From contig RHPI01003491.1 of the NCBI GenBank assembly GCA_009103225.1, positions 100,450 to 164,449 on the forward strand: DNA of 64,000 nt, given 5' to 3'. The notes below the pieces were generated by a model. It worked only from the letters and a program-made list of their open reading frames with translations, did not search any database and was not told the DNA's origin. Of the stretch, positions 12,681 to 50,800 are shown one piece after another. The stretch comes from Chlorokybus atmophyticus. Lineage: Eukaryota; Plantae; Mesostigma and Chlorokybus algae. Position 1 is the first letter of the stretch. Each line of letters starts with the position of its first letter. The position numbers were made by a program, and so were the translations under genes.

Positions 12681-12841
12681 TTGGCCCACTCGGGAGAGTA
12701 AGGGGCCGGCTGGAGGGGGTAGGGAAGCTCGTGTCCTGTCAACATTTATTTTTCATATTGGAGACACGACAATGTCTTTAACACAGCGCGCAACATCCCT
12801 AATGCACCGAGCGCACTAGCTTTACAATTGCACATGTACAG

Positions 12842-16886: not shown

Positions 16887-16968
<82 letters not shown>

Positions 16969-19900: not shown

Positions 19901-22575
19901 TTTCTCATCTTCCTCCACCTCCTGACTATCCTCCTCTTCGTCCATAAGTACGTGTCTCTTCACGTGCGCACCACCCCTTGCCTTGGATGGACCCACTGTG
20001 ACGGGCAGGCCAAGCGCGTGCTGCCTCTCTGCGCGGTCCATCACGCGCGCGGCCTCCTCGTGCGTGCAGTAGCTGCCGAGGTACAGCAGCTTGCTGCCAC
20101 TGATGCCAATCTTCACTTGCCAAAAGCACTTCCTCTTGTTCCATGTCACGCCGACCCGGCGGGGAGGCTCCTCCTCCCGGCCGTCCTCTCCGCCCACCTT
20201 CTCACCTCCTCCTGCACGCAGTCTTGTTGTGTTTGCTTTTGATGCAAGAGTCGCCGCTTGTACTTGACCGTGGTGCCTTGGCAACCCGAAACATATACAA
20301 GAAGTCGGATCATGCAAGTATGACACAGTTGTGAAAAGTTGTGCAGTTGCATACAGACAATTATGAGAGTGCAGTGAACGGTATTGTGGGACGGTTTTCA
20401 AGCTTGGGAAGTGCAATATCAACCCAGTAGCAGGCGCGACTCTGGGCAATGCATGAAACAGTTTGCAACGGAACATACCTTGTCCCTTTCCATGGGCTGT
20501 CAGCTTGGAAGGATGTCTGTGAGCACTTTTTGAATATGTGATGTTTGCCGCTTCCTCCTCCTGCTCATCTTCTCTACTGTCGTCCTCCTCACTCTGACCA
20601 ACCTTTGCTGCTTTGTGAGCTCGCTCTTGTGTGATCGGCAGGCCGAGCAATCTCACCCTCTCGGCGCGCTCCCGCGCAGGCAGCCTCCTCAAACGTGCTG
20701 TAGGCTCCAATGTACACTTGCTGGCGGCATGCCGTAATTTGCACTTGATGGCAGCCACCTCTTCGCCTTACGCCGGCTCGGTGGCGAGGCGCTTTCCCGC
20801 CCTCTGCGGGTGGCATCCATGAGTTGCCTGATATTGTGTCTGCGTGTGGTTGGTTTTGTGCCTACATGCGCATATACACACGCATGTATGCTCAATCGCA
20901 CAACGCGCATGCACACACAGACACACATGCACACGCAAGGGTACGGGCACGCACGCTTGCCCGCATAAGCAACTGCGTGCCCACACACCTTCTCCCTTTT
21001 CCTCTAATGTGGGCCTGGAGGCAATAAAGCGCCTCAGTTTTTGTCGCTTGGGCTCCTCTGCGGCCTGCTCTTCCTCCTCGTACTCGTCGTCGTCCTCCTC
21101 GTCTTCTTCACCTCCCCACCTCCCTGGCGTATTGACTACATGCGTCGGCCTTGCAACATCATGACTCCCGTCCTTCGTGTATCTTCGGTCCAGCGTAATC
21201 TCCAGGCCGAGCGCGCGTTCCTTCTCAGCTCGTTCCCTTGCGCGCACAGCTTCGTCAAATGCCACATAGCCTCCCACGTACAAGCACTTGCCGTTTGCTC
21301 TAATGTGCACGCGGTAACGGTAGGTTTTCTTGCACCACGTCACACCCAAGCGGCCCTGAGATGACTCCCGCCCTCTTCGTCTCACACCGGCTCGCTTTAC
21401 TAGAGGAAGCACCTCACGCCGGGTGCACTTGCGTGAGTTGTAGCCCACATCTACGCGCATGGATCGTTCAGTGCCAAGTGGTAGGGGTTATCACTACACG
21501 TTGACATGCACACACTTTACCGTGTTCTGCCTCCCAATCTTCATCATCGTCTTCAGAACTTGAACTCATAGATACCGCGGCCTCTTGCAGTACAACTTGC
21601 TGCTGCGCCTCCTCCTCCTCCTCCTCCTCCTGCTCATCATCATCTTCCACCTCCTCTTCCTCTTCATCTCCCTCGAGACAACTTCTCATGGATCCGCCTG
21701 CTCTCGTCACCAGCGGTGCTCTCTGCTTGTCCTTCGTGTTGTACACGCGATCCAGTGTTATGTCGAGTCCATGCTCATGCTCCCTCTCCGCGCGCTCCCG
21801 CGCGAGCATAGCCTCCTCGTGCGTATGGTAGCAGCCCACTAACAGCTGCTTGCCGCTCACATTGATGTGTGTGCAGAACTTGCGCGCTGTCTTCGCCCAC
21901 GTTACACCAATGCGGTGGTGGCGAGGAGGAGGACGCGTTGAAGCCTTTGCCTTGCCGTAGGTTCCTCCTCGCTCTTGCGGAACGCGCCCCCGCCTCTTTG
22001 AGCTTGCATTGATTCTCCGCGCATGCAGGAGGGCGTTGCGCATGGCGAGAAGGTGTTTGCGCTTCCACGCGTTGGCTTTGCCATCTGCATAGACACGCTT
22101 GCTCAGTTTATCGGTTGCCATGCTGAGCGGATGTACTACATGTCGTTTTAGCATTGAACGTGCAAGGATGCTGTATGCAGTCCAGCGTCTACATATCAGC
22201 AGGCACGCATCCGTATTCACACATGCACACATGCACAAGCAAGCACATAGAATGTGCACGCAGTCACGTTCTTCAGCAGGCACATGCACACGTGCACAAG
22301 CACGCGCACAGAGTTCAGCAAACAAACGCAAGCATAGTGTACCACAGCAAACCATGCCGTACCGTACCCGCACCACGCATCCATGCTATGAGCACGCACC
22401 TGTGTATTGCGCACCTTCACGCAACTCCTGCATTGGTACAGCAGTGGTGCGGTGTGTGATGTCCGTCCACGGCAGGACGCGTGCCTTTGCAGCGCTCTGC
22501 TTGTCTCCGTGAAGGGTTGCATTGACACACTGATAACCATCTGCAGAAAAGAGGCTATGTTTGACAGGCGTACAC

Positions 22576-22653
<78 letters not shown>

Positions 22654-22654
22654 N

Positions 22655-22726
<72 letters not shown>

Positions 22727-24450
22727 TTGCAACACTGAGTGTTTGTACATGGCGCACCTTTGTTATCTTCTGGTCTTTCTCCTACCTCGTTGCATTCAAC
22801 GCCACATTGCCCAAACTCCTGAGGCTCTTCCTTCCTTTCGACAACTGCATCTTTCGCCTCACCTTGTTCTTCATCCATGTGTGTGCGTGTCTTCAAGCGC
22901 ACACCACCGCTTGCCTTTCTTCGATCCAACGTGATGGGCAGGCCAAGGGCGTGCTCCCTCTCTGCGCGGTCCATCACGCGCGCGGCCTCCTCGTGCGTGC
23001 GGTAACTGCCGAGGTACAGCGGCTTGCTGCCGCTGATGCCAATCTTCACTTGCCAACTGCATTTCCTCTTGTGCCATGTCACCCCCTGGCGGGGAGGCGC
23101 CTCCTCCCTGCCCTTTGTTTTGTTTGCTGTTGCTGCATCAGTGGCCGCGGGCTCCTTGCCTGCGGTGGTCAAGCGCTGTGTTGTGGTGTGGTGTGTGTGT
23201 GTGTGTGGTGGTGGTGGTGTGTGTGTGTGTGTGGGGGGGGATGCGGTCTGAACTGCTGGTTGTGTGTGTTTGACAGTGNNNNNNNNNNNNNNNNNNNNNN
23301 NNNNNNNNNNNNNNNNNNNNNNNNNNNNNNNNNNNNNNNNNNNNNNNNNNNNNNNNNNNNNNNNNNNNNNNNNNNNNNNNNNNNNNNNNNNNNNNNNNNN
23401 NNNNNNNNNNNNNNNNNNNNNNNGTGAGAGAGAGAGACATGAAGACACTTTCCTCTTGTCTGCAAAGTAGCACCTCTGACACTGTTCCCCACCTGCAAGC
23501 TGCTGTCTTGGTTGTGTCTGCCAATGTCGAGCTGATACGGCATGAACAGAATGCACGTCCAGATCTGCGTTATCATCATTGCATGTTGGCGAAAGCAGGC
23601 TGGCAGTCCCAATCTCACTTTCGTCCAATGCACTCTGACTCAGGACCCCTGCACAAGAACAGAAGAACAGCCATGAACACGCACACACACAAGCGCTCAT
23701 GCGTGCACACACACGCACGCTCGTGCACACACACTCCAAAAAGCAAGCAAGGTAAAGCTCGCTTGCAACGACTTGCAAGCGAGCTTCACCTTGTAAGCAG
23801 TGGAAGTACTCCGCGCGCACCGAGGCGGGCAAGTTATCGTCGCAATCGTTGGCAACCAGCTCTCCGCTCACAGCTATGTGCTAATGCAACCCAGTGCATT
23901 GCATGCATGTGCATGTTGTAAGGCCACAACATAAGAGCACACAGGTGACTGCAGGACTGCATAACATCCACCAGCACGAAGTGTACAGGGGTTCAAAACA
24001 ACAGGTTACACTACCTCCAACAGCTTGGCCATGCACAGCTTCCCCTGCCTTTCTGGGCGAGGAAAATGCCTCATGCCTCATGCTCTTTTGTGCGGTCATC
24101 ATGCAGTCATCTGCTTTGACAGAAACAAGTTGTAGTAACCAAGTTCAAAAGAACGGCAAGCACCAACAGCTCCAGTTCTTTGCAAGTACAATTGCTGCTT
24201 TGCTTGTGAGGGCATGGGCAGCAGGAAGGTAGCTGTTCACCCAATGATTGTCAACGCTGCTTACAACATGGCAAAGGCAGAAAGTCGCACTGCTTACGTG
24301 TGAAACAATTCGTGTTGAAGGACACAATGTGGCTACCTTGCAAGCGCAGACATGTCGCCGCCGCTGGCGGTGATCTTGCAGTAAGCTCTGGGCGAACAGA
24401 CGTGCTGCTTGCAAAACACACCGCTTGCCGCTGTATAGGCATGAATTAAT
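15245..24450 (-). CDS. Multi-exon gene encoding ten AP2-like DNA-binding domains, each followed by an acidic tract; built by intragenic tandem duplication of a ~2.9-kb exon block; 5' end uncertain
   Basis: Phase-1 AG/GT exons: 23159-22758, 22540-22415, 22084-21521, 21450-20989, 20803-20479, 20211-19822, 19678-19544, 19231-18698, 18625-18170, 17915-17547, 17440-16997, 16830-16702, 16423-16238, 16081-15620. All are multiples of 3 except 20803-20479. Motif GVTWxK...WxVxI...LYxGxYxTxEEAxRxxxRA. Further candidate exons at 23.5-24.45 kb and 15.25-15.55 kb. Confidence 0.78.
16890..16963. repeat. Intronic (GA)n microsatellite
   Basis: GA run in the A-E intron; the paralogous intron has a longer run at about 22577-22722. 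Confidence 0.95.
22577..22722. repeat. Intronic (GA)n microsatellite with a single-N join
   Basis: GA run; N at 22654. Confidence 0.95.
23279..23423. other. Assembly gap
   Basis: Run of N. Confidence 1.
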
Positions 24451-31347: not shown

Positions 31348-32719
31348 CCTCCGCATCACATGGGTCGCGTGATGGACTCTTTGGATTGCGACGGACTGCG
31401 CCGGTCAAGCAAGCCGGAGTTCCATCAGCGACCGCCATAATAACTTGTCAAAGGGGTCTGACTTTTCGTCAAAGAGTATTTGAGGCTTGAATCATCCATG
31501 CCGGATGAAGTTGACGGATGTCATCCGGCAAGGTGTAAACTACCAGCGACGATGCTGACAGCAAGCGGCGCTCGGCCGCCGGCGTTGCGGTACGTATAAC
31601 GCCAGCAGCATGACAATTGATTTGTGCTTCACATGGGTAAATGTGGGATGGTCAAATGACACACTGAATGTGCTTCACATGATATTTTAGGGCACGGGAG
31701 TCCATGATACCTTATAGTAATGATTTATGACAAGCGCACAACAATGCACTCACATCACTACACATTTTATTTTAGCACCACCATCACCACCTCAGTCTAC
31801 ATGGATTTCATGCTACGTAATAAAAATGTAAAAGCATGGGCAGGGCAGGCAAAATGGAGCAGCGGGGTAACGCGCAGCAGTGGACTTGTATAATTAGCAC
31901 GCATGAACGTACACGATCTGTTTGTATTCCAAAACAAAAAAGGCATATATATGCGAAGAGCAAAACAAAGACTTACTTACAGAGTTTGCAAAAATTGTTT
32001 AAATTACCTCGATGTATCCAATTCACAATACAATATATTATGTTTATTCATTTACGGAGTATTAGGAGTTCATCGGTAAGTTTATTATTAAAGTTTATTT
32101 AAAAGGTAATAAGGAGTAAAATGCATTTGTATTCATGTTTAACATTATGTAACATGACATGAATTATTGCATTTGCAATAGCACGTCTTCAGGTACGGAG
32201 GTTGCAATCATATATTTGCTGAAAAAGTCAACATACATTAACATAATGAGTGACATCACAGTCAAATCCATGCATGATGCCACACATGCTGATATAAGCC
32301 GCTGCAATAAGTGCAAAAATTGTCAGGCTGTTGCTTCATTGATCATTCTGCTGTATTGGATTCATACTCTATTAAGCACATGAAAGCATTGGAGGTGGGG
32401 GAGCATACAAACCATGGCATTCATGCATTGTGTAACATGGCGCCTTACCCCTTGAATAGTAAAAGTCGCTAAGGTAGCACATGTCTCATAATCATATATG
32501 TATAAGGTGTAATAAAGTATGCACCCTAGCTGCCCAGCTATGACACATGCAGTGTATAATAATAAAAATATACATCATATAGACTACCCATACCTATATT
32601 CACCCACATGGCTGTATTATAACAACACGGCTCCATTAATGCAGTGCCATATAAGCAGCCGCGCAGGTGCTGTACAACAATTTAGAGGGGCTCAGTCAGT
32701 CAGCGTCGTTGTCATGCAC

Positions 32720-33513
32720 TGTCATGCGCGAGCATGTAGTGTCATGTGCATGATGCCCTCGGGGCTGGCGACATGGATGGACCTTGGGATTTTGGCTCTC
32801 ATAGCCATTTTACATGGTTTATGTGTTGGGTTTTCATTGGGAACTCATGTTTGGGTCCTCATGGACGTGAGGGAGGTGTGTTCGAGGCGTATCCACAGTC
32901 AGATACGGAGCTGACAGCATATTTGGGTCACTATGGTATCTCGCACAGCTGTTTCGGAGTTGTGACTTTAAGAAGCCGTAACTTACAGTTGGAGTGGCGG
33001 TTTGGCCATGGGTTGGCGTCAAAAGATACGTCTTGAAGTGTACTTGAAGAGGATGAGCTTGGATAAGCCTTTCCTACCTGTTTACCGTTACTTATCAACG
33101 CCACCATGACTGTTACTATGCTGGTGCAGATTGACAGTTAGGGTAGTTGGAGAGTTGGTTGGGCTTGAGCTCAACGGTGGTATATAAGGCTTTGCTAGCT
33201 TGTTTCCTAGTTTGGTTGGATGCAAGTTGGCCTACTGGAGTGCAAGCAACACCTTTGGGAAGAGGTTCTTGGCTGAGCGGATGCGTGTGCACATGCTTGC
33301 ATGTATGGCGTGTGTGCACGTGTTCGTTGCTGTGCGTTGCTGTGCATGAAGGGGTGTGTGTCACTGTTGCGACTTTGATGCACCGTATGGGCTGCCTTAG
33401 CATGTACTTTGAGTGAGGATTGAGTTGGGACTGCTCTACACAAGTGAACGGCTGATTGCAAGTCAAGTTGTGGTCTACTTGCCTACCTTTTGCAAGGGGA
33501 CACGCATCTTTCA
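32720..33513 (+). repeat. LTR segment A1 (U3 remainder-R-U5)
   Basis: First 201 bp repeated at 40860-41060; contains TATATAA at 33181; ends TTTCA just before the putative self-priming site. Confidence 0.8.
33181..33187 (+). promoter_or_regulatory. TATA box of the element's promoter
   Basis: TATATAA 33 nt upstream of the segment complementary to the PBS (inferred TSS about 33214). Confidence 0.65.
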
Positions 33514-33526
33514 CTTGCATCCAACC
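33514..33526 (+). promoter_or_regulatory. Self-priming primer binding site (Tf1-type)
   Basis: ACTTGCATCCAACC (33513-33526) is the exact 14-nt reverse complement of GGTTGGATGCAAGT (33214-33227); no TGG-type tRNA PBS lies between the LTR and gag. Confidence 0.75.
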
Positions 33527-33572
33527 CATCAGCTGAGTTTGCTCGAGGTAGAAGCGAGTTGCAGGCGTGTTC

Positions 33573-35220
33573 ATGCCTTTGAGATCTGGTGAGGACTGGC
33601 ACGAGAGACCCACGAAGGCGGCTTTGAAGAGAAGAGCGCCGAGAGGGACGATCACTCCGGTGGTGGAGGGCGTCGCCGAAGAGGTGGAGTTGTCGAGTGA
33701 CGAGGAGTCCGACATCGAGGACAAGGGTGGAGAGATGCCTGATTCAGCTTCAATCATGGATAGCACACCGAGATTCAGTTAGTGGGAGGCCCGGCACGGC
33801 GGACCTACGCGACTTCATCGACCGCCTCGACTCCGAGATGGTCAAGTGGGAGTATCGGGACAAGTCGGGGTGGGACGAGCACAAAGCCTTCAAGATGTTG
33901 CCTCTATACCTCAAAGATGAAGCCCTTGGCACGTGGAGAGAGTTCAAGGAGCAGCTGGAGGTGAGGGAGAGGGCGTTGCGGCTCGGTGCACCGGCTGCGT
34001 TTGAAGCGGAGTGGAAGAAGGAGCAGCCCGTGACTGAGTTCAAGGCGCTCTTGGGGAAGACCTACCCACAATCAACACCCGCCAAGGTTCGTGAGCTGAG
34101 TTTCTTCAAGCGCAACGCCGGGGAGACGGCGAGGATGATGTATACGCGCATGCTCAAGCTCTTGACGGACACGGACTACAAGGTGATGACGGATCAGACC
34201 GCGGCGGTTGTGTACCTTCAACAACTAGAGGCGGACTTGAGGCTGAAGGTGGAGACCATGTTGACCACTCAGTCCGAGTTTGGCACATACACGCTTGCGG
34301 ATGTCTTCAAGGTGGCCGAGACGGCAGAAATTCAGCATGAGTACCTCAAAAACATTGACCGACAGCGTCGGGGGTTGAAGTTGCTTGAGATTTTGGAGGA
34401 GAAGAGCTCTTCCAAGCCCGCGGCAACATCGGCGGCAAGCAAGGCAGCTGGTGGGAAGCCAAAGGAGTTCAAGCATGCCAACAACGCGGTTGTGGAAGGT
34501 GTGTCGGGTGCCAAATGCTGGTCGTGTGGAGAGCAAGGCCATATTGCAAGGGATTGTGGGAAAGGCAAGAAGGTGGTGTGCTCTCATTGCAAGAAGGGTG
34601 GGCATGTTGATGCCAAGTGTTGGAGTAAGCATCCAGAGCTGCGTCCACAACAAGGAGCGGCAGTCGGAGCTCACTCGAGTGTGAGAGCGGAGCCATCAAT
34701 GTCGGAGGTGACAAGGGCATTGGCGGCAATGCAATCGGAGTATGCATCGTTGAAGAGCATGCTCGAGCGAGGGAAATGGCCCGAGAGAGGAGCGGAGGAT
34801 AAGCCAAGCAGCTCCGGAGGTTACCTCGCGTATAGTGCGCTCTCCGGAGGCACTAAGGTGGCAGCGGTTGCGACGACGAGAGCGTCGGCACGCCGAAACG
34901 CTGCCCCAGCTCCCCCGACTAGGATGGTTGAGGAGGAGGCCGCGCCCGTCCGCGAGGAGGGTGTGGATCATGATAGGATGCGGGCACCAGCTGCACGCAT
35001 GCCTATGTCATTTAAGTTGCTGCCAACAACCCCGTTGGAGCAAGAGAGTTCGCGCTCGGAGGGTGCGAAAGTGCAGCCGACTGCTACGGCAACGGCGCGA
35101 CATGATGTCGGCATCGGTGGCGGTGGTGAGCACAAGAGAGTGGAGGAGCTGCTACAGATGTGTAAAGCTTCTCGAGGGTGCCAAGATGCTTTCCCAACAG
35201 CCCGCAACTCAAGCCAATGA
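33573..35220 (+). CDS. gag: Gag with two CCHC zinc knuckles; frameshifted by a 4-nt duplication
   Basis: Removing TAGT at 33780-83 restores TPRFSGRPGTADLRDFIDRL; knuckles CWSCGEQGHIARDC and CSHCKKGGHVDAKC. Confidence 0.9.
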
Positions 35221-38200
35221 AGAAAACTTGGAGTTGACGGCGCCGTTGGAGAGCGTTGCGGCGGAGCTGGTCGGGCAGCCGCTTGTTTGCTTGAAGGACC
35301 TTGGAGTCAGCAAGGAACACGTGATGGAGCTGTTGCAAAGTGCTCTAGACACCACTAGGACTGCCTCGACAAAGTCTCATGACCATATGAGCAAGTCTCA
35401 TGAAGATATGGTGGCGCAAGCAGGCCGTATGGTTGCGCGCGCGGAGCTGGCGGCGCCCGAGGGGTCCGCGTCGGCGTCGAGTTCTCTCACTCAGCTTGAA
35501 GACAAGCTGGAGGAAGGTGTGGGGAGTGTAGGAGGGATGTTGGCAATGCTTCCCGCCACTCGGCCGGCCTTGAGAGAGAAGATATCGCCGAATGTGGCGA
35601 TGGTGGACAACCGTGGGGGGCACATCAGCCTAGACGGCTTCGTGCCAGATGTTGGCTTGGTGGATACAGGTGCACAACCTGTCAATATGGGTGCTAGAGC
35701 TGTCAAGGGGATGGGACTCAGCCCCAAGGAGTGGGAGCCATGCCCGGTCATGATCAATACCTCGGCGGGGACCGTAGAGGCCGTGTGCGGCATAACGGTG
35801 CAGCCGGTGGACATATGCTTGACTGCGGTGGGAGGTGCTACCACGTCCTTCAAGGTTCGATGCCTCATCACGGATGCGAAGGGGTACGATGTGCTGCTCG
35901 GACAAGACTTCTTGTTCCCCGTCGGCGGCGGCGTTGACAATTGGATCGAACAAGGGTTCTTTCGGCCGCGTTGGCGTGTGGGTGGAGGTGAGAAGGCCTA
36001 TTTTCCGTTGAGCATCACACAAGGGGGTCTTGAGAGGTCTCCAACCTCTGCATCTGCTGTGTGGGCGTGCTTGAGTCGCCGTTCAGTCAAGGGATGGCTT
36101 GGTGACAGCACCGACATGTACTATGACCATGTGGAGGAGGGGGAGAGTGTCCTCGCACACATGGAGGAGGGGAGACCTCCGGAGCTGGTCTATATGGCGC
36201 AAACTCAGTCACAAGAGCTGGAGTTGGCTTCACAACATCGTGCTCAGCGGCAACAAGAGGCTCAAGACAAGGTTAGCCAAGCATGGATGAAGGATGTGAT
36301 GGCATTGGAGCCGCCATTAATGCCCGAGGGTGTGAGAGCTGTTCATCCGCCTATCAACTACAGCACCGTCGAGTGGAAGGTCCCCGAGGAGGGTGTTGTG
36401 ATGGTAGAGCTATTTGATGGCATTGCAAGTGGGCTTGCGGCCGCGTTGAACGCCGGCATCAAGGTGCGGCGCTATATCTATGTGGACCCTTCGCCAACGG
36501 CGCAACAAGGTGCACAACATCATGTGAGGATGTTGTTGAAGAAGTATCCAGATCTGCTACATGAGGATGCGGTGAAGGGCTTTCAAAGCACATGGCCGCA
36601 AGACATTTGCTTGATAGGGCCACATCAACTTGCAGCTATCGGCCATGTGGATTTGCTTGTAGCCGGGTGGGAATGCCAAGGGCATTCACGGGCTGGTCAT
36701 GGCAAAGGATTGATGGATGCGCGCTCGTCATTGTTTTGGGAGTTAGTGCGCATCATCAACATGATTCAGCAAGGACAAGAGCAGCCCATGGCGTACATCG
36801 TCGAGAATGTACCAGCTGAAGATGACAAGCGCAAGCGCGTGCGAGAAGACTATCAGCTGGTGAGACATGTGCTAGGCCATGAGCTGGTCATGGATGCGGC
36901 ACGGCATGGTTCGCGCGCGCATCGGCTGCGTGTGAAGTGGACAAACCTCGCGCCGGTTGAGTTGCTTCGCACGGTGCAGCAAGAGTACTCTAGACCGCAA
37001 GGTTTGACAGTCAACCAGGTGCTGGAGCATGGGCGCACAGCACAACAGGTCAGCAAGGCTGATCGGCCGCCTCAAGAGGTGGTGAACCAGGTCGGGCACG
37101 ACATGGCGGCGCTGCCGACATTGGTGACATACCCAGGCTCTTATGCATTCCGCAAGGGAGGGCCAGGGCTGGTGTGGGACTCACAGAACAGCAGGTTGGA
37201 AGAGCCAACAGCTGGTGAGCGCGAGCGTGCGATGGGGTTCTTGTCCGGTGCGACAGCGGCGCCGGGACTGAGTGAACAACAGCGTCGAGTGCTGCTAGGG
37301 CAAGCCATGGACCAGAATAGCATGGTGTGGCTTATGGTTGTCTGCCTGGCGGCACAGGAGTTAGTAGCAAGCATCATGCCGATGCGACAGCAAGCACGTC
37401 GGGAGCCTGCGCCTCTGTCGAGGGGGTGGGAGCATTGTGTACATAATGAGGAGAGTAAGGGGGTGTCTTTTTCGCCTGTGACAGCTGCAAGTGGCAAGAA
37501 AGCGGCTGTAGATGGTGCCTTGAAGCAGGAGAAGGCCACTGACCAGACCATGGAGTGGTGTATAGGCGAGCATGTGACACCGCATGAGCGTGAGTGGCTC
37601 GAGGCATTGTTGGCGCGCAAGCGTGACTGCTTTGCCTACTCTACCAAGGAGTTGGGAGTCTGCAACTTCTACACAATGGACATTGAGTTGACCTCTCCGG
37701 AGCCCATCTTTCGTCGGCAGTATCGGCTGAGCAAGGTGGAGAAGGAGTTTGTGGCAGAAAAGTGTGTTGACTTGTTGGAGGCTGGACTCATTGAGGAGTC
37801 AACCTCGGACTTCGCGCCGACAGTGTTGCCGTTGAAGAAGGATGCACAGGGAAATTGGACCTCAAGGAGGATGTGTGGTGACTATCGGCCATTGAATGAG
37901 AAGACCAAGGCTGATCGGTACCCTATGCCTATCCCTGAGGCTATCTTTGATGACATCGGTGATGCAAAGGTGTTCTCCATCGTGGACTTGAGGCAGGGCT
38001 TCAACCAGATCGCCATCAAGCCCGAGGATCGTGGCAAGACAGCGTTTTGGGGAGTGGACTAGCTCTACCAATGGAAGGTCATGCCGTTCGGCTTGAAGAA
38101 TGCGCCTGTGAAGTTTCAGCGTGTGATGGACCGTGTGCTTCGTGGTCTACCCTTCGCAAGGTGCTACATAGATGACATCTTGGTGTTTAGCCACACGATG

Positions 38201-40645
38201 GAGGAGCATCTCGTGCACTTGGAGCGCGTGTTCGAGCGCGTGCGCGAGAGCGGCATGAGGTGTCACCCGGAGAAGTGCTTGTTTGGAGCTGATCGCATCC
38301 CGTATCTCGGCCATGAGATAGTGCCGGATGGCGTCCGTGTGCAGCAAGCAAAGGTGGATGCCTTGGTGCAAGTGCCCGCACCGACGGACATTAGCCGGCT
38401 TCGAGCGTTTCTCGGCTTGGCGAACTACTATCGGAGGTTCGTGGAGGGGTATAGCAAGATTGCAAAGCCCTTAAATGAGTTGTTGAAGAAGGACAAGGCC
38501 TGGTGCTGGTCGGAGGAGTGCCAACGTGCCTTTGAGCTTCTCAAGGAGAAGCTATGCACCGCGCCGGTGTTGAGACGGGCGGACTACAACCGTCCCTTCA
38601 TCCTACACACGGATTGGAGCCGTTTGGGCATTGGGGCCGTGTTGTGTCAAAAGGATGATGATGGGAAGGAGTATGTGGTCGCGTATGGCAGCCGAAGCAA
38701 CAATAACGCTGAGGCAAACTACAGCTCCTATGAGGGGGAGTGTTTGGCAGTAGTTTGGGCCATAGTTCACTTCAGACCGTTCCTCTATGGCCGTCCCTTC
38801 ACACTCATCACCGACCACCAGCCCTTGAAGTGGTTGATGACCAATGACAAGCTCACGGGGAAGCATGCCAGGTGGGCGCTCATACTGCAAGAGTATGAGT
38901 TTGAGATTGAGCACCGAGCTGGTGTTGACAACATGGACGCGGATGGGCTGAGTAGGAACCCAAACCCTTCATCGTTGGATGAGAGTGAGGCGAGGCATGA
39001 CTATGGCATGCCCGTGGCTGGGTTTTTGGCCTACCGTGTGGCTTCTTTGCTGGTGTTGGCGGGTTCGGTGGAAGCATGCGCATCCATGCGCGCAAACGCA
39101 GCTGGAGATAGCGACAACAATGGTGTAATGCCGCCTTTGGAGGCTGCACCAGCCCCAACGGTCAATGACATTGAAGGGGAGGAAGCCGAGGCTTCAAAGG
39201 ACATTTGGAGGGATGAGCAAGTGCTTGCTCACCTCAAAACCGGGCTGTTCCAAGCTGGTTGCAGCACGGCGACGCGAGATCGCGTGTGGCAACGCGCGCA
39301 ACGCTATCGATGGGAGGGAAACCACCTTGTGCGCTTGATGCCGGATGGAGGTGTGAGGATTGTGCCTCAACCACATGAGAGGAAGCCGCTTGTGGAGCTG
39401 CTTCATGAGAGGATGGGCCACTTTGGTGTCAAGAGGACACTTGGGCTCGTGCAATCAGCATATTGGTGGGCTGGCATGAAGTCTACCGTGGCGGAAGTTG
39501 TTGCAAGCTGTGTGGAGTGCGACAGAGTGAAGGCAAGCTTCAATGCCAAGCACCCACAGCTGCACCCTCTACCTATTCAAGGACTTTTCTATCGGTGGAG
39601 CCTAGACCTGGCCGGAGATCTACCAGTCAGCAAGAGAGGCAACCGCTACGTGCTCGTGATGATAGAGCACTTCTCCAAGTGGGTCGAGGTCGTGGCGCTG
39701 CCATCGAAGGAGAGCAAGCTTGTGGCTGAGGCTTTCCTTGATCAAGTCCTTAGCAGATTCGGTGCTTGTGCTGAGGTTCTCACTGACCAAGGCACCGAGT
39801 TTCGTGGCCAGTTCGATGACTTGTTGGCGCAAGCCTTTATCGACCATCGAAGGACTTCTCGTGACCATCCTCAAGCCGATGGGCTTGCTGAGCGAATGGT
39901 ACAGGTGGTGAAGAAAGGGCTTCGCAAGTACTTTCTCAACCACAACAAGAGAGACTGGGACTTGGCGTTGCCATGGTTGGCAATGGGCTATCGCATGACG
40001 CGGCAGGCTGCGTTGAGCTCATACAGCCCCTATTTTTTGTTGTATGGGAGAGAGCCCATATTGCCAACATCAATCCGGAGACAGGTTGAGCAGGAGCTTG
40101 ACTTGGAGGATCCCAATGTGTGGGAGAAGGAGATGGCAAAGCGTGCGGAGCTGTTCCGGTGTGTGATGCCGATTGCACTTGGCAACTTGCAAGTGGCACA
40201 ACACCGCGACACGCTGCGCTATGCCAGGGTGAGGAGTGGCTTCTACAAGCCAAGACTGCAGAAGTTTCAGCCCGGAGACTTTGTCTACCTGCAGAGAAAG
40301 ACCAAGGACACGTTGGATACGAGTGCGAGCCGCACCATCCTTCGTGTGAAGAAGCTTCTCAACAACGGTGTGTTGTTGTTAGAGGGAGCTGATGCCAGGA
40401 CCACTAAGGAGCACATGAAGAGCTGCGCTCCTTGCCATCTGCCAAACGTGGATGACAGTGTGGATCCGGCTCTGGCAATACCAGATGTGGGCCACCGTTG
40501 TGAGCGGTGTGGCCGAGCGGAAGGCTGGGACACCATGCTGCTGTGCGACGGGTGTGTTGCCGGTTGGCACATGGAGTGCCTTCGTCCACCAGTTGAGGAG
40601 ATCCCTGATGGGACATGGTATTGTCCAGCGTGTACGAGGACTTGA
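35160..40645 (+). CDS. pol: Pol: protease - C5 DNA methyltransferase - RT - RNase H - DDE integrase - PHD; one in-frame TAG at 38060-62
   Basis: LVDTGAQ, YDVLLGQDFL; RRMCGDYRPLN, MPFGLKNAP, CYIDDILVFS; FILHTDWS; HERMGHFG...CVEC; WSLDLAG, LTDQGTEF, QADGLAERM. The stop falls in AFWGVD*LYQW. Confidence 0.95.
36395..37350 (+). other. DNMT3-like cytosine-5 methyltransferase domain within Pol
   Basis: Motif I ELFDGIASGL, II VRRYIYVD, IV AGWECQGHS (Cys 36674-76), VI IVENVP, VIII AHRLRVKWTNL, IX ERERAMGF, X RRVLLGQAM. Confidence 0.92.
40499..40633 (+). other. PHD finger at the integrase C-terminus
   Basis: CERC...MLLCDGC..GWHMECLRPPVEEIPDGTWYCPAC (C4HC3). Confidence 0.95.
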
Positions 40646-40692
40646 GTAGCGTGTGAGTCAGCTGAAGGCGCACGAGGGCGTTGACGCTCAGC

Positions 40693-40701
40693 TGCAGGGG
40701 G
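40693..40701 (+). promoter_or_regulatory. Polypurine tract
   Basis: GCAGGGGG run directly before the B1 start (TGGTGACAC). Confidence 0.6.
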
Positions 40702-41224
40702 TGGTGACACGCATCTTTCATGCGTGTGTCAACTTCATGTGATGAGAGATGGTGCATGAGGCAGCATGACATGGTCTCATGGTGTATAATAGCATGCGTA
40801 CATGCATGGCAAGGAGGTTTACGATGAGTTCGAGTCACGATGCGGGAAGGCACGACAGCTGTCATGCGCGAGCATGTAGTGTCATGTGCATGATGCCCTC
40901 GGGGATGGCGACATGGATGGACCTTGGGATTTTGGCTGTCATAGCCATTTTACAGGGTTTATGTGTTGGGTTTTCATTGGGAACTCATGTTTGGGTCCTC
41001 ATGGACGTGAGGGAGGTGTGTTCGAGGCGTATCTACAGTCAGATACGGAGCTGACAGCATNCGCATCTTGGTGACACGCATCTTTCATGCGTGTGTCAAC
41101 TTCATGTGATGAGAGATGGTGCATGAGGCAGCATGACATGGTCTCATGGTGTATAATAGCATGCGTACATGCATGGCAAGGAGGTTTACGATGAGTTCGA
41201 GTCACGATGCGGGAAGGCACGACA
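40702..41224 (+). repeat. 3' terminal repeat block B1-gc-A2-(N)-B2
   Basis: B1 40702-40857, GC, A2 40860-41060, N at 41061, CGCATCT (matches A1 33503-09), B2 41069-41224 identical to B1. Confidence 0.8.
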
Positions 41225-42632
41225 GCACAACATCGTCGTCATGGTCTGCTCTTGCTCCTGCCAAGCCCTGACGCACACACCTTTGCGCAGGTGGTGCTCC
41301 CTACCCTATGCCCAGCTCTGCCCTACGCTCTACTGTTCAGTCTTGTGTTGTATTGGTGTAGCACTGCTCTGGGCCCCTCTGGTTTGTTTGCTTGCTTGTG
41401 TGTTGTGTTGTTACTCAGTGTGGAGTTAGCTTGTGTTGTTACTTGGCGTGTGTTGCACAACATTGCACATTGCATTTAAGCTTTATATACGGGTGTCATG
41501 CTATATTGTCTTGCATTCTCAACTATCATCTTCATATACATGCTGCTGCCGCCTGCTGCTCGAGACTTGCATATCATTGCACACACGAAATGTGTGCTGT
41601 AGTATAGGTGGTGAAGGCCCCAAGTGTAGAAATTGTGTTGGTGTTGTTGGTTTGTTCATGTGTGCTAGCTGCTTGCAAATGAGCATGTTTGTGGGATGAC
41701 TACGATGCATACCCTATACATAGTCTAAGCCCCATTCTGTGGCTCAACTGTTTGCCTGCTGCTCCTGGTGCTTGCTTGCGTGCATATGCTCTGCTCTGCA
41801 CGGGTTGCGGAGTGTTCTACTACATTTGCACCAACTCATCAGCCCATCCACCGTCATACATTGACGTTTGAAATCAACATTTTTATATGTATTCTTTACA
41901 ACATACTCACTCTGTTTCAGCTTATACGTTGTTGAGCAATAGCGAGAAGAGAGTCAACATGTTATGAGTTGATACCAAGCAATTCGAGTGTTAACATGGC
42001 AACTTGCGCAAGAGGCGCAAGCATAAGGCATTTAATCAATTCGCAAATCATGCGCACATACGCATAGTGTGCCAGCAGCAGCAAGCAAGCCAAGAACCCA
42101 AGCACAATTTATAGTAAACCCCGGGGCCTATGCTTTTCCTACACCAGCGCTGTTATGTGCGTGCAGTGTGTGGCCAAGCGGCAGTGACTCTCTGTGACCA
42201 ACCTGAGGATCATTGAGGCAAGCATGCGTGTCAATATAAGTGCACACGGATACATGCGCAAAGTTAGCATGAGTGCCACAACTGCCATTAAAATATTACA
42301 AACCCTGGGTCAAAGACGGCTCCCGCCACCATACTTCCCACCCTTCTTGCACCTCTTGCTATCAATTCCGTTCTGACTTCCATATCACCACTAAGCACTG
42401 CCGCCCAGCTCGACCTTCTTCATTGTGATCATGTCAATGCAGGGTAAAGTCGCTGAACGCAGCTAGCGCCAATGCAGCGCATCTTTGAAGTCCACGGCTG
42501 CAAATGTTTCTTAGCAACTGAGCTAGGCGACAACACCACCTGGGCTCAATTGTTGACAAACGCTTGCAGCCACGCTCGTGGCAACACGAATCAACATACA
42601 CCTATACGCTTATTTACATGCGGCATCATCTC

Positions 42633-45388: not shown

Positions 45389-46559
45389 CGACACCGCTGA
45401 CGACACCACCGCCGCCGCCGCCTACGTGGCAGGCTACAATACTGAGCCAGGCTTTAATCTGGATTGAGCTATCGGAGGTTCGCATCCGGTTTCATTGACC
45501 AGGGTCCGTCAAACTTGAACCTTCTTCGATTAGGGTTGGACTGAGACATCTGCAATCCGGGTTGATGACTGCTCACAGCACGTGTCTCAATTAGGGCGTT
45601 GTGTAACACACACAAGTGCTTGCCTGTTCATCTGCGCCCATCGCATCCTGAATGCAGTACACATTTGGGAGGCTGTTGCAGTGTCAGTGTGTACAGTAGT
45701 ACTAAGAGAAAGGCGTCTTGCAATTACTGCAAGTGGAAATTGTTTCGTTTTGGGTTGTCACTTGTGCGTGAATTGGGTGGTGGCGTCTTGGAGTAAAGCT
45801 GGACAAGGAGGCCCGGCTATCTTCAGGTATGTTACAGATTTCACTTCGCCTTGCAACGTCGGGATTTGTTACAACTTCAACACATGGTTTTGAGTTGTCT
45901 TGCGATTGTTGAAAATCAAAGCAAAGCAAATCGCATCCTGGCGATTACTAACAGGCAAGGCATTGATTGTTGGCTGTCATTTTCTTTCCCTGCACTTTCT
46001 GTGTTTGGTTTTGCTCATGTGCGTATTACAGTGCATAAGTTCACAAACACACGGCACTCTACGCTTGTTTGGGTAAATAGTAAAACACAAGGTTGTTCTT
46101 TCTGCGATGTTCCTTACTGTACTTGTGTCAAACAAAACAATGTTTGTACTCTTTTCCCAGTGTTTAACCCCTATTCCGCGGCACAGTTTCTTTCATGCCA
46201 CTTCTACTTACTGTTTTCTATGAGTCCCTCTGTTTACTCTTGTACTTTTGTCGCTTTTCTTCACTGGTCATTGTGCGCACATATAGCTAATAGCATGGGT
46301 GGTTGTGCGAAGCAATTTCAAACTGTCATCAACAAGCCCTGAGAACAGAGCGAGCTTCTTACGTGCTGCGACGCATGCAGTTGACATATGCTAAGATCTT
46401 CTTGCTTGTGGAATTGTTTCTGTACTGTATTTATGCTATGGTGTCATGCTTTCGGAATATGTGACGATGAGCTTAGGACGGCTGCACATTTGCAGTTGGG
46501 TTGCAGTTCATTGCGAGGTGAATGGGCTCAAGAGCATGTGGGCAAGAGCTTGGAGCGTA

Positions 46560-46918
46560 GCGTGAGAGCGCAGAAAACACAAGGAACCACAACAGCAACA
46601 ACACCGGCAACAACAAGAACGCTACTACTGATGACCCGAGCCACATGATACCCCCACCACTGCCGCCAAGGTAAAAGGGCTGTAATAGTGCGTATGCGTG
46701 CGCGCGCACACATGCACACACACATATGAGCGTGTTCTCATGTTGTCTAATTTCAGACGATCTGCTTGTGTGGTGCAATATTTGTTCCATCAGGTCGGTG
46801 CGGCAAACAGCCACAGGCTACGCAGCAAGCAACAACAACCCGACCACCAACATCGCACGCGCATCACAACAACAACCACAACAAAAGGGCTACCAGCACA
46901 ACCCTTACCCTCCCACCC

Positions 46919-46973
<55 letters not shown>

Positions 46974-47643
46974 GCAACAGTACTACCACAACCAACAGCA
47001 GCAACAGCAGCAACATCCTCAAGGCAGCTACGCGCAAATCCACGCCATCGAGCAGCAGCAACAACAACATCCACAACCACCATACCAACATCAACAGCAT
47101 CCACAACACCAACACTACCATCAGCAACATCATCAAGAAGAGGCGTCCACTTCGGGCTTTCACAATGACACTGCCGAGACGAATCAAAGCGAGTCAGGTG
47201 AGTTCATAAGCGTGTGAGTGAGTGAGTGAGTGAGTGAGTTGTGTGCGTGGCTGTGTGTGTGTCATATGTGGACATGTTGTGTAGGGAGGATCCGGGTTGC
47301 CGTGCGTGTGCGTCCGCTGTCGGACACCGAGCGCGCCCGCAAGGAGAACCCCAACGTGCTGCGCGCCCTCCCCGACAAAACAACATTGCAGGCATGCGCA
47401 CAATCACATATGCACACACGTGCACGCTCGCTTGCGTGCGTGCGTGCGTGCACGCGCACTTTCACGTACGCGCGCATGCAAGTGCACGCGCGTGTGGCAG
47501 CCTGCCTGTGTGTGTATGTTGATGTTGTCGTCGTCGTCGTCGTCGTCGTTGTTGTCGTTGTTACTGAGGCAGCGCTGCATTTACTCAGGTTATCCAGCCT
47601 AATGCCCCCGCTAACATGCTCCCAAGAACCTTTCAGGTACACT

Positions 47644-47699
<56 letters not shown>

Positions 47700-47837
47700 C
47701 CATTGACAATGGTGTAACAAACATACAGTTTGACGCGTGCGTGGCGCCGGAAGTGCCGAACAGCCTCTTTCCCGAGGCGGTAGACGCGTATCGCCTTGTC
47801 GACGCCGCTCTTGAGGCAAGCACGCATGCGTGTATAC

Positions 47838-47868
<31 letters not shown>

Positions 47869-50800
47869 GACCACAACCACAACCACAACAATAACTACTA
47901 CCATTACTACAACAGGGGTATGCTTGCACTGTGCTGGTGTATGGGCAGACCGGCTCGGGCAAGACCTTCACGATGTTTGGTCGCGAAGAGGTAAGCACAC
48001 ACGTGTGTGTAAGGGTGTATGTGCGTGTGCGCACGTATTGTGTGTCTGCACATGCACGCACGGGTGTCCTTGTCCATGCGTGCGCTCGTGGGCATGCATG
48101 TGCATGCGTGTACATGAGTGCGCGTGCCGGCATGTGTGCTTGCGTGTGCACATGAGTGCGTTGCTGCTACGAGCTGCGTGCGCGTGCACCCCGCACGCAC
48201 ACGCACACGCATATGACCCCACCTCACACCCCCGTCCTTCCCCTCAGGCCATCGACTCCGCCCAGTACGCGGGTCACCCCGACGACGGCCTCGTGGTCCG
48301 CTGCATGTCGCGCCTGTTCGAGCGCGTCGCAGCGGCCAGCAGCAGCGGGGCAGGGAGTGGCGTAAGTAAAGCCCCGCGCAGTAAGGGGAGGCCGGAGAGG
48401 GAGGTGGAGTATGGCGTACGGGCAACGTACTTGGAAGTGTACAACGAACAGGTAGGCAAAATTATGCAGGTATGCCGTGACGCGCGTGTGCGTGGCTGTG
48501 TGCACATATGGAAAAGCTCGTTTCCATGCGCGCGTGCGTGTGTGTGCGTGTGCGCGCGCGCTCGTGTACATGCGTTTTCACAAGCGGTAAGGCCCCTGCA
48601 CACGTGGTTGGCTGTGTTGGGTACGAGCTGTTTGCGTAAACATGTGAGAGGGAATTGGGTGTGCGTGTGGATAGATGTACGTGCATAGGCAAGCGCACCC
48701 ACGCACCCACCCACCCACACACAGGTGAACGACCTGTTGCGGCTGACCAACCCCTCACGCGCGGTGAAGTTCGCGCCGCCGTCGCGTGCGGGGGAAGGGG
48801 GGGGACACTTCTACGTGGAGAACCCGCTGGAGGTGAGGTGTGAGGGCGTGGCGGACGTGTGGAGCGTACTAGCCGAGGGAGCGCGCAACCGCAAGGCAAG
48901 TACACACACATGTACGAGGAGTATGCTTGGCTAGTGTCAGGGTAGCGTAGACTTGTTGTAGTTGAATCTTGTATCAGCAGCATGCCTGCTAATCTGACAT
49001 CAGTACAACGTTACCCTGCAAGGGTAGAACTGTACACACAAACATAGGTTGTGGATAGCTTTTACGCTTCCACATATTGTGTGCCAGACTTACCTGTTGC
49101 GTGTGTCGAGTAGGTGGGGGCGCACGCGTTGAACAAGGACAGCTCCCGCTCGCACACGCTGCTTCAAGTGCACATCGACATCGTGACCAAGGGGGATGTC
49201 GACGCCGGCAACAGCAGCAACAACAACAACAACAGCCATCATCAACAACAGCAAAGCACGCGAAGGATAGGAAAGCTCACCTTCGTGGACCTCGCGGGTA
49301 TGTACTTATTGAGTACTGAATGCTTGGCATATTGAGTGGTATGCATGTCGGATTTGTTGATCTGAGTTGTTGTTCCGTGCATGTGTGCGTGTGTGTAGGG
49401 AGTGAGAGGCTGAAGCAGAGTTTGAGTAGTGGGGACATGGTAAAGGAGACCGGCAACATAAACCGCAGCTTGTTCGCGCTCGGCCAGGTGGGGATTGCAA
49501 TGTGGTCAAGTACAAGCCCCACACACCATTATTACGCATGCAACCTCGATGATACTGTGTTTATTTATTTATGCGGGCTACAATTGTCTCTCTCAGGTGA
49601 TATCTGCTCTGGGCGATACAAAGTCCGCTCGAAGCACAGCCCACATTCCATACAGAGACTCCAAACTCACGTGCCTGCTATCGGACTCTTTGGGCGGGTC
49701 CGGCTTAACTCTGATGGTGGCGTGCCTGAGGTGAGAGTTGAGAAGTGAATTGGTTGATCGAGTGCAGTCATTGCGGGTGTCGGGTCGTATTGTGAATGAT
49801 CTGACTGGTGTGTGCGGTTAGCCCGACCGCAGCGTCTGCGGAGGAAACGCTGGGGACTTTGTTTTACGCGAGCCGAGCGCGGAACATACACAACACACCT
49901 GTCGTGCACATGGATCCCGAACAACAGGTGCACACCTACCCACGCACACATACATGCGCTTGCACACACATGCAAGCGCACCTGCACGCGCAGCGGCACA
50001 CACGCTTAACCGCATATGCAGTACACATGATGTCCTTCTATCAAGTCAAACCTACCTGCATTGCCTGCAAATAGGTTGACCTGATAAAGCGACTTCACGC
50101 ATAGCTTGATGAAACCGTAAAACAGTCATCTTCACACCAGAGTGCTGATTATACAAATTTGACAATGACAGGAGATGGCGGCATTGAGAGCAGAGTTGGC
50201 GTTGATGAAAAAGGAGAATGCTCGCTTACGCACGCAGCTGAAAGAGAGGGAGGGCGGGGTCAATAACCGCCCGATGCTACAACAACAACAACAACCACAG
50301 CAACACTCGCACCAACAACAACTGCATCAAAATAACCGTACCGACTCCCCGCCCACTCCGATGGTACACATGCACAACGTTTGCACCTTATGTGGTTGTT
50401 ATGCTGTATGACAAGTTCTCATGAACACGCTCAGGTGGCATTGCTAGTATGGCTCATGTGGCATCTATATGTTTCATGACAGAGCGATAGTGCTGCCATG
50501 CGGCATGCGCGCGATGTGGATGAGGCCGAGGAGCAGCCAACAACATCGTACGCGTATCACAATAATGTCCAAAGTCATCATCATGACAACGCAAGGCGCC
50601 AGCACGCCGACTCGGCACCCTCAAGTGCTGGAAGGTGAGTATAACAACTTGGTACATAGTGCGTGCGTACATGCGTGGTAATATACGCCAATGTGCAGGT
50701 CTGTTTTGCCGCTGATACACAAGCCGCGTGTGAACGATCGGAAGCAACACCAACCCAATGGAATGCAAGCGAGTACGCACAACAACAACAACAACAAGCT

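Follow-up and report, generated by a model that had tools for sequence, protein, structure and literature searches.

How does a Ty3/gypsy retrotransposon that encodes an ordinary DDE integrase come to be inserted as a circular permutation of its own reverse-transcription product? This question is raised by a nearly intact element in the window, by which we mean the whole 64,000-nucleotide stretch of Chlorokybus atmophyticus contig RHPI01003491.1 that was analysed (assembly GCA_009103225.1, positions 100,450 to 164,449). The first-pass annotation had described the element as reading A-internal-B-A-B, flanked by a 4-bp duplication, and had proposed integration from a 2-LTR circle cut inside U3. 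We confirm the layout and observe that it recurs in relatives from Klebsormidium, Closterium, liverworts and moss-associated DNA, indicating that the integrase probably cuts a palindrome inside the LTR of an end-joined cDNA, although the circle itself is inferred. The element (32720-41224) and its flanks are made up of the following features.

32716-32719 (unstranded): left copy of the 4-bp target-site duplication, GCAC
32720-33512 (+): A1, the 3' two-thirds of the RT-defined LTR (distal U3, R, U5), starting TGTCATGC, with a second TGTCATG at 32740
33181-33189 (+): TATA box (TATATAAGG) inside A1
33214-33227 (+): inferred 5' end of the genomic RNA, acting as self-primer (GGTTGGATGCAAGT)
33513-33526 (+): primer-binding site of the Tf1 self-priming type (ACTTGCATCCAACC), directly after the LTR end
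33697-35220 (+): gag ORF with a CCHC zinc knuckle
34835-38062 (+): pol part 1, with aspartic protease (about 35657-35914), DNMT3-like cytosine methyltransferase (about 36350-37357) and the N-terminal half of RT, ending at an in-frame TAG (38060-38062)
38081-40645 (+): pol part 2, in the same frame, with the C-terminal half of RT, RNase H (38507-38896), integrase HHCC (39371-39535) and core (39590-39871), and a PHD finger (40499-40633)
40694-40701 (+): polypurine tract (GCAGGGGG)
40702-40857 (+): B1, the first 156 nt of U3, starting at the first base after the polypurine tract and ending GCACGACA, with a second CACGAT at 40836
40850-40867 (unstranded): internal att palindrome GCACGACA-GC-TGTCATGC, whose two arms are the ends of the integrated element
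40860-41060 (+): A2, the first 201 nt only
41061 (unstranded): single N, probably a contig join hiding about 580 nt of A2
41062-41069 (+): last 7-8 nt of A2 (CGCATCT/T), joined to the first base of B2; the end-to-end joint of the two RT-defined cDNA termini, lacking 2-3 nt of U5
41069-41224 (+): B2, a second copy of the start of U3, ending GCACGACA at the insertion boundary
41225-41228 (unstranded): right copy of the 4-bp target-site duplication, GCAC

With respect to the repeats, A1 (32720-32920) matches A2 (40860-41060) at 98% (4 mismatches in 201 nt), and B1 (40702-40857, plus GC) matches B2 (41069-41224, plus GC) at 100% over 158 nt. At the B1|A2 border, 7 of 8 arm positions of the palindrome are complementary. 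Single Ns and N-runs occur elsewhere in the window, so the N at 41061 is probably a contig join; the 7-8 bases after it match the end of A1 (33503-33510), and A2 therefore shows only 201+8 of about 791 nt, which fits roughly 580 nt missing at the N, close to the 590 bp predicted in the first-pass annotation. In relatives without gaps, A2 is full length. One small correction is needed: the primer-binding site is the self-primer complement at 33513-33526, so that the RT-defined LTR ends at about 33512 (...CATCTTTC) and the A2|B2 joint lacks 2-3 nt of it, rather than the 3-4 nt given earlier.

The RT-defined LTR is B+A, since the polypurine tract abuts B1 and a 14-nt self-priming site abuts A1. 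The inferred self-primer, 33 nt downstream of the TATA box, is a perfect 14-nt complement of 33513-33526, which none of 300 shuffles reach. A self-primer complement of 9-16 nt likewise abuts A1 in the related loci L004 (Klebsormidium nitens), L087 (Calypogeia), L088 (Closterium), L012, L031, L035, L051 and L061, and by eye in L024 (nine related copies scored at 9-16 nt; at most 6 of 300 shuffles reach the observed length), with the upstream partner about 30 nt after a TATA box in the window and the moss family, whereas four older moss-family copies give 8 nt or no match and score at chance. The sequences differ between families but keep the same relation, and a G-run in the same position precedes B1 in the related families examined. 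Because the TATA box and the inferred RNA start lie in A, A1 alone can drive a normal RNA.

The coding content is that of a Ty3/gypsy element, with Pfam hits in the order protease, RT, RNase H, integrase and a DNMT3-like domain inserted between protease and RT (PF00145 hit; DNMT3A is the best PDB match at 5e-9; the homologous region is present in 64 related loci). The HHCC motif and the DD35E residues D509, D569 and E604 (nt 39605, 39785 and 39890) are conserved in 13 relatives, with D509 and D569 invariant and E604 in at least 90%. No tyrosine recombinase was found: there is no Phage_integrase hit at E<=1 in gag, in the pol pieces scanned or in six reverse-strand ORFs, nor at E<=0.01 in the three forward ORFs scanned whole, and the internal region is fully occupied by gag and pol.

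The layout is not a peculiarity of the window. We observe it in 14-15 complete and about 18 3'-end copies of relatives; it occurs in K. nitens (L004), Closterium (L088), the liverworts Calypogeia (L087) and Marchantia (L089), ENA contigs (L001, L005) and more than 25 JGI moss-associated contigs. Termini are TGTC...GACA, and perfect 4-bp flanking duplications occur in 10 of 21 copies with both ends visible (8 of 18 plus 2 of 3 more), with 3 of 4 bases matching in 4 further copies, against 0.3% and 3.3% by chance (the 0.3% estimated from mismatched left/right flank pairs). The CA-GC-TG core is found in L001, L004, L005, L006, L019, L024, L087, L088, L089 and the moss-associated family; its spacer is always 2 nt long at B1|A2 and is absent from the integrated ends, while the RT-defined ends have no conserved TG/CA across families. 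Furthermore, the A2|B2 joint differs from the exact end-to-end join by 0 to +/-3 nt in young copies, and in 22 moss-family copies its length classes show no phylogenetic signal (11 changes on the tree against a mean of 11.4 with shuffled labels), so it looks re-made at each cycle.

We suggest that the element belongs to a streptophyte clade of Ty3/gypsy retrotransposons whose members carry a DNMT3-like domain in pol and a PHD finger on the integrase, the published relative being KnitGypsy-Dnmt3 of K. nitens (de Mendoza et al. 2018, PMC5890265). The K. nitens copy L004 has the same A-internal-B-A-B order, a GGCA-GC-TGCC core in a near-perfect palindrome, a TCTT duplication and a self-priming site. 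K. nitens proteins are among the hits at 43-49% identity, although unnamed metagenome, Logan-assembly and unnamed NCBI-assembly proteins are closer, at up to 59%; with the K. nitens protein used for comparison, the window element shares only 43% identity (BLASTP best local alignment), and it is about 8.5 kb as assembled against 14.6 kb. The legend of Fig. 4c in that paper states that the repeat structure is that of a DIRS element, but the paper gives no termini, duplications, palindrome, priming mode or integration mechanism, and we found no published mechanism.

Our favored explanation, held with moderate confidence, supports the earlier circle model in outline, and every part of that interpretation that could be checked held. 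In this scheme, RNA starts about 30 nt downstream of a TATA box inside A, and self-primed reverse transcription, using the polypurine tract directly before B, makes an ordinary linear cDNA with LTR = B+A. The DDE integrase does not use those ends; instead, the U5 end and the U3 start are joined to each other, most likely as a 2-LTR circle, giving the imprecise A2|B2 joint. The integrase is then inferred to cleave after the CA on each strand of the CA-GC-TG palindrome, 99-183 bp inside U3, leaving two recessed CA-3'OH ends with 2-nt GC overhangs that are inserted with a 4-bp stagger. The resulting A-internal-B-A-B copy keeps promoter, R, primer-binding site, polypurine tract and a full downstream LTR, so that it is replication-competent and the layout is inherited. 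Everything is, however, read from integrated copies, with no circle, cleaved intermediate or enzyme activity observed, and the contigs that look circular (L005, L019, L065) can be explained as assembly-graph cycles and are not evidence for circles. In addition, a circle carries two identical palindromes, and cutting the other one would give A-B-A-internal-B, which is absent from about 18 loci where A1 is visible, while A-internal-B-A-B is seen about 30 times; the model thus needs a directional determinant that is unexplained. A sizeable class of A-internal-B copies (6 complete and about 7 partial) could come from 1-LTR circles, from later B1/B2 recombination or from a different repair route, which the data do not distinguish.

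This asymmetry would be explained by an alternative that we regard as possible but less likely, in which the same integrase chemistry acts on linear cDNA. The integrase would cut the palindrome of the 5' LTR only, for example because that LTR becomes double-stranded long before the 3' LTR is completed, and insert the two palindrome-derived ends, leaving the outer cDNA ends (U5 end and U3 start) facing each other as a break that the host repairs. End joining would give the imprecise, non-heritable A2|B2 joint and single-strand annealing between the two B copies would give A-internal-B. The scheme explains why only one permutation is seen and why A-internal-B copies with 4-bp duplications are common (L048, L064, L086); B is also short and fairly constant in length (99-183 nt), while A ranges from 288 to 1044 nt. 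This alternative is nevertheless purely inferential, requires the small B fragment to stay in the intasome until integration, and has no precedent known to us, whereas cleavage of circle junctions has one (PMC1905944). It is unlikely that reverse transcription itself makes a linear A-internal-B-A-B cDNA through extra priming sites or end-to-end template jumps, with normal 3' processing of its ends. The integrated ends do look ordinary, with 7-8 bp inverted repeats and TG...CA, and only one permutation exists, but no purine-rich tract lies before the palindrome in B in the families compared, so nothing would start the plus strand at A, and the polypurine tract and primer-binding site sit at the B start and the A end. 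A blunt-end origin of the palindrome would furthermore predict a longer spacer than the constant 2 nt, and even with a template jump making the joint, the left end still needs a cut at the palindrome.

Movement by a tyrosine recombinase, supplied in trans or hidden in the polyprotein and recombining a circle at B|A, is very improbable. The split-direct-repeat order is indeed the one typical of PAT-like and Ngaro elements (PMC8969392, PMC5890265), but 4-bp target duplications and TG...CA termini are signatures of DDE integrases, DIRS elements lack target-site duplications (PMC8969392), no Phage_integrase signal was found in the ORFs scanned, and the DD35E triad is conserved across the clade. 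Least likely of all is an assembly artefact at the N or a one-off rearrangement of a canonical element. A single N does sit exactly inside A2, and B1 and B2 are identical while A1 and A2 differ at 4 sites; independently of the N, however, the left flank abuts A and the right flank abuts B with a matching GCAC on each side, and the identical order is found without gaps in independent assemblies (L001, L004, L087, L088), including genome assemblies of Calypogeia (41.7-Mb record) and Closterium (1.9-Mb record) with repeats 98-100% identical. No relative with ordinary B+A LTRs at both ends was found, although same-family sister copies could not be collected from the window's own genome.

Among other known systems, PAT-like, Ngaro and TOC1/TOC3 retrotransposons (order DIRS) show the order A1-internal-B1-A2-B2 (PMC8969392), are usually modeled through a circular or end-joined intermediate, and DIRS elements also carry a DNA methyltransferase domain, Dam-like or, in SymbioDIRS, Dnmt3 (PMC5890265). 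They nevertheless encode a tyrosine recombinase and make no target duplication, whereas the clade described here has a DD35E integrase, 4-bp duplications, TG...CA ends and a gypsy-type RT/RNase H. The proposed cleavage is in line with that of HIV-1 and foamy-virus integrases, which make an internal, restriction-like cut at CA on both strands of the palindromic 2-LTR circle junction, turning a circle into an integration-competent linear DNA (PMC1905944, PMC1180852, PMC4372172). In retroviruses, however, the palindrome is the U5|U3 joint itself, so the product is the normal, unpermuted provirus and the route is a side path, while here the palindrome lies inside U3, the spacer is 2 nt rather than 4, the product is permuted and the route would be obligatory. 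Complementarity between the first nucleotides of the RNA and a primer-binding site directly after the 5' LTR is shared with Tf1/sushi-type elements, Tf1 probably priming in this way (work from H. Levin's laboratory in the 1990s), but Tf1 has canonical LTRs, integrates through its RT-defined ends, and has a chromodomain rather than a PHD finger on the integrase and no DNMT.

A broader reading, which we consider somewhat less likely than not, is that an entire, old clade of Ty3/gypsy elements has abandoned the RT-defined cDNA ends as integrase substrates and moves obligatorily through an end-joined (circular) cDNA. If so, the split-direct-repeat layout of PAT, Ngaro and TOC elements has arisen convergently with a different enzyme, and is a signature of integrating through a circle rather than of tyrosine recombinases. 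More speculatively, since the CAGCTG core consists of CHG sites and both this clade and DIRS elements carry DNA methyltransferases, the DNMT3 domain might mark the internal palindrome of resident copies, or one of the two palindromes of the intermediate, and so decide which one is cut.

The architecture itself was noted in one sentence in 2018, and what is new here is its breadth and the evidence bearing on mechanism. In practice, LTR-finding software that expects identical terminal LTRs will misannotate or miss this clade, or call it DIRS. Very young copies are present in Klebsormidium, Closterium and the liverwort Calypogeia, and Marchantia also carries a copy. Whether LTR-LTR circles are dead ends or integration substrates has been debated for retroviruses for decades; in these elements, nature seems to have made the circle, or at least the joined ends, the only productive route, leaving a readable scar in every insertion in the form of an imprecise U5|U3 joint inside the element.

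Repeat searches and BLAST confirm the permuted layout of the element, and reading of the sequence provides the flanks, the borders and the G-run. The features of the element are as follows:

32710-32719: target DNA immediately left of the insertion, reading TGTCATGCAC and ending in GCAC
32720-32920: part of A1 that matches A2 at 98%, starting with TGTCATGC
33214-33227: 14-nt stretch in A1, at the inferred RNA 5' end
33513-33526: primer-binding site directly after A1, complementary to 33214-33227
36350-37357: DNMT3-like cytosine methyltransferase, between protease and RT
38060-38062: single in-frame TAG, splitting the RT domain
40499-40633: PHD finger at the end of the integrase
40694-40701: G-run, directly before B1
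40702-40857: B1, identical (plus a GC spacer) to B2
40860-41060: A2
41061: single N
41069-41224: B2 (plus GC), ending GCACGACA and followed by GCAC

The internal border reads GCACGACA-GC-TGTCATGC. The single N at 41061 is one among other single Ns and N-runs in the window and is followed by 7-8 bases identical to the end of A1 and then by B2. The permutation does not depend on that gap, because the unique left flank abuts A and the unique right flank abuts B. We also observe that the target DNA at 32710-32719 repeats the element's own terminal 8-mer TGTCATGC next to the real end; this was not seen consistently in the other copies, and it may be chance or a target preference for end-like sequence.

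The internal region is filled by three ORFs: gag, with a CCHC knuckle; a pol ORF with protease, a DNMT3-like methyltransferase (best PDB match DNMT3A, 5e-9) and the first half of RT; and, after the in-frame TAG, a second pol ORF with the rest of RT, RNase H, an HHCC + DD35E integrase and a C-terminal PHD finger, which is present instead of a chromodomain. Gag and pol are otherwise open, and A1 and A2 differ at 4 of 201 sites. This copy is young but probably not autonomous as assembled. In an alignment with 12 relatives, D509 and D569 are conserved in all and E604 in at least 90%. Pfam scans at E<=1 gave no tyrosine recombinase signal in the gag and pol pieces scanned or in six reverse-strand ORFs. 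The DNMT3-like region is present in 64 related loci, and precomputed Pfam annotation lists a PHD finger for most close protein relatives. The core of the palindrome, CAGCTG, consists of CHG sites, although any link between methylation and the choice or protection of cut sites is speculation.

With respect to the LTR that reverse transcription would make, the 14-nt stretch at 33214-33227 lies 33 nt downstream of a TATA box and is perfectly complementary to 33513-33526, a length that 0 of 300 shuffles reach. The same relation holds with unrelated sequences in Klebsormidium (16 nt), five of nine moss-associated copies (9-16 nt; the other four, older copies score at chance), Calypogeia (12 nt) and Closterium (14 nt), and by eye also in a separate moss-associated family (L024). 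The complementarity covaries across several families of the clade. This appears to be the Tf1 type of self-priming. It follows that the RNA start and promoter are in A, that the primer-binding site abuts the A end while the polypurine tract abuts the B start, and that the RT-defined LTR is therefore B+A, with U3 = B plus the first ~490 nt of A. A1 alone can thus drive a normal genomic RNA that ends in A2, in line with the first-pass annotation, which had argued that the product would transcribe the same RNA. A second polypurine tract before the palindrome, which would let RT start the plus strand at A, was looked for, but no consistent purine run was seen in the families compared. A 15-nt direct repeat, GACACGCATCTTTCA (33499-33513, 40706-40720 and 41073-41087), lies at the end of A and 4 nt inside the start of B, that is, near both ends of the RT-defined LTR, and was considered as a possible template-switch homology. 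However, it is absent from the other families examined, and the observed joint is not the overlap fusion that it would predict.

The layout is neither an artefact nor a one-off. The best protein relatives are only 59% identical and the exact ORF3 product is not on record. Same-family sister copies could not be collected, so related families were used instead, which show the same order in independent data.

Related loci with the permuted layout (locus; source; layout seen; junction core; 4-bp duplication)
L001; ENA contig; polypurine tract-B-A-B, no gap; perfect 20-bp palindrome, GTCATGACA-GC-TGTCATGAC; left end off contig
L004; K. nitens scaffold DF237474; complete A-internal-B-A-B; GCACGGCA-GC-TGCCATGC; TCTT
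L024; JGI moss-associated contig (separate family); complete; CATGACA-GC-TGTCATG; AAGG
L087; Calypogeia fissa genome assembly (41.7-Mb record); complete, repeats 99.4% and 100%; CACGACA-GC-TGTCACAC; GTCA
L088; Closterium genome; complete, repeats 99.75% and 98.4%; CTCCGACA-GC-TGTCACC; AAAT
L089; Marchantia; same order, with an N-run in A2; CACGACA-GC-TGTCATGT; none clean

In addition, one scan of JGI metagenomes returned 80 loci, mostly from moss-associated samples, of which at least 25 carry polypurine tract-B(~175 nt)-[CA NN TG]-A(~300 nt)-B, and nine of these also have A1 8-10 kb upstream. Some of the loci are the same sequence from two samples (L007/L012, L045/L052, L036/L037 and L029/L055). 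We treat L029/L055, in which A2 is followed by unrelated DNA, and locus L053, in which B2 is truncated after about 15 nt, as rearranged copies and not as canonical ends.

The window contains a second related element, a decayed fragment at about 40-50% protein identity, and several other features outside the element:

9782-12771 (+): decayed relative running from RT to PHD finger, then a G-run and a short B-like stretch ending GACACGACA-AT-GTCTTT
6833-7222 and 9270-9650: two ~390-nt direct repeats (82-91% identical, about 2.43 kb apart), flanking the ORF at 7639-8232
7639-8232: copia-type gag ORF (Retrotran_gag_2, 1.5e-24)
15500-23900 (-): about three tandem units of ~2.8 kb (60-85% identical), carrying long reverse-strand ORFs with no Pfam match
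16888-16960 and 22578-22720: long (GA)n tracts bordering the tandem units
23279-23423: N-run
57193-58593 (-): leucine-rich-repeat ORF (LRR_4, 1e-16)
46550-50340: region rich in (CAA)n runs, next to an ORF (47645-48688) with a weak, sub-threshold kinesin-motor match

The decayed fragment has no DNMT, protease or gag upstream; it has no A or B2 downstream and is therefore uninformative, whereas the repeats around the copia-type gag ORF probably represent a truncated or non-autonomous copia-like element.

With both ends located by their motifs, 8 of 18 copies have perfect 4-bp flanking duplications and 4 more match at 3 of 4 bases, while mismatched left/right pairs give 0.3% and 3.3%, respectively; L087 and L088 add two more perfect cases. 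The termini are always TGTC...GACA. The 2-nt spacer of the internal palindrome is not carried at the ends and is always 2 nt long in the copies examined, and the RT-defined ends show no conserved TG/CA between families. In the window, the terminal 7-mer is repeated subterminally on both sides (TGTCATG at 32720 and 32740, CACGAC/T at 40836 and 40851). All this fits a DDE integrase acting on the palindrome arms. Cuts after CA on both strands of CA-GC-TG would leave exactly the recessed CA-3'OH ends with 2-nt 5' overhangs that normal 3' processing produces, although this last step is inferred.

The A2|B2 joint is the U5 end fused to the first base after the polypurine tract, with a precision that varies between copies.

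A2|B2 joint relative to an exact end-to-end join (copy; joint)
L087; exact
L088; two extra T
Window; lacks 2-3 nt
L004; about +/-1 nt

Among 24 moss-family copies aligned, the polypurine tract|B1 boundary is invariant, but the 22 whose joints could be classified carry 0, 1, 2, 3, 5, 6 or 7 nt between fixed anchors. On a tree built from B1+A2 with the joint left out, these classes need 11 changes, against a mean of 11.4 for shuffled labels, indicating that there is no phylogenetic signal. The joint therefore looks re-made at each cycle by imprecise end joining rather than copied from a template, although recurrent indels at an AT-rich site are an alternative reading.

Probing of all loci with family A and B sequences, together with the other families, revealed an unexplained asymmetry between layouts.

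Census of layouts (layout; count)
A-internal-B-A-B, complete; 14-15
internal-B-A-B, 5' end off the contig or lost; about 18
A-internal-B, complete; 6 (three with good 4-bp duplications)
internal-B followed by flank; about 7
solo A-B; 1 (L054, flanks AAGT/AAAT)
A-B-A-internal-B; 0

The derivative forms occur in the moss-associated family (A-internal-B copies and one solo A-B unit, at loci L009, L022, L047, L048, L064 and L086 and at L054:6059-6527 on the reverse strand), and they could come from recombination between the repeats, from 1-LTR circles, or from annealing repair at integration. Some contigs look circular, namely L005, an ENA contig with two perfect tandem B+A units (L005:11634-13977; internal-[BA][BA]-internal with a 400-bp terminal overlap), and loci L019 and L065, while locus L006 (L006:1-15423) shows two internal regions 94% identical, separated by a single B|A LTR (internal-B-A-internal). 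L005 and L006 are either tandem arrays or circles, or assembly-graph cycles. Because a single A-internal-B-A-B copy creates exactly such cycles in an assembly graph, L005, L019 and L065 were set aside as evidence for circles.

A 2-LTR circle has two identical palindromes, so random choice predicts A-B-A-internal-B as often as A-internal-B-A-B. Either something directs the cut, or the intermediate is not a simple closed circle. One alternative is that the palindrome of the 5' LTR is cut on linear cDNA and that the outer ends are joined by the host after integration, which would also yield A-internal-B by single-strand annealing; B is short and fairly constant (99-183 nt), while A ranges from 288 to 1044 nt. 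The sequence data do not discriminate between these models. The structural reading of the first-pass annotation is right, and the mechanism it proposed, in which circularised cDNA is cut by the integrase at the internal palindrome, is the best available explanation in outline, held here with moderate confidence, whereas we regard the linear-cDNA variant, which is close to it, as possible but unlikely.

The repeat order is that of PAT-like and Ngaro elements (PMC8969392), which use tyrosine recombinases and make no duplications. De Mendoza et al. (2018) described KnitGypsy-Dnmt3 and remarked, in the legend of their Fig. 4c, that its repeats are arranged as in DIRS while its domains are those of Gypsy; our full-text searches found no other paper on this and no mechanistic treatment. 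Internal cleavage of a palindrome by a retroviral integrase, and use of 2-LTR circles as an integration reserve, are documented for HIV-1 and foamy virus, but there the palindrome is the circle junction and the provirus is not permuted. Elements of this kind have been published but are barely characterised. The interest of the element described here lies in the clade-wide, conserved permutation and in the testable implication that a DDE integrase obligatorily linearises an end-joined cDNA at an internal site.
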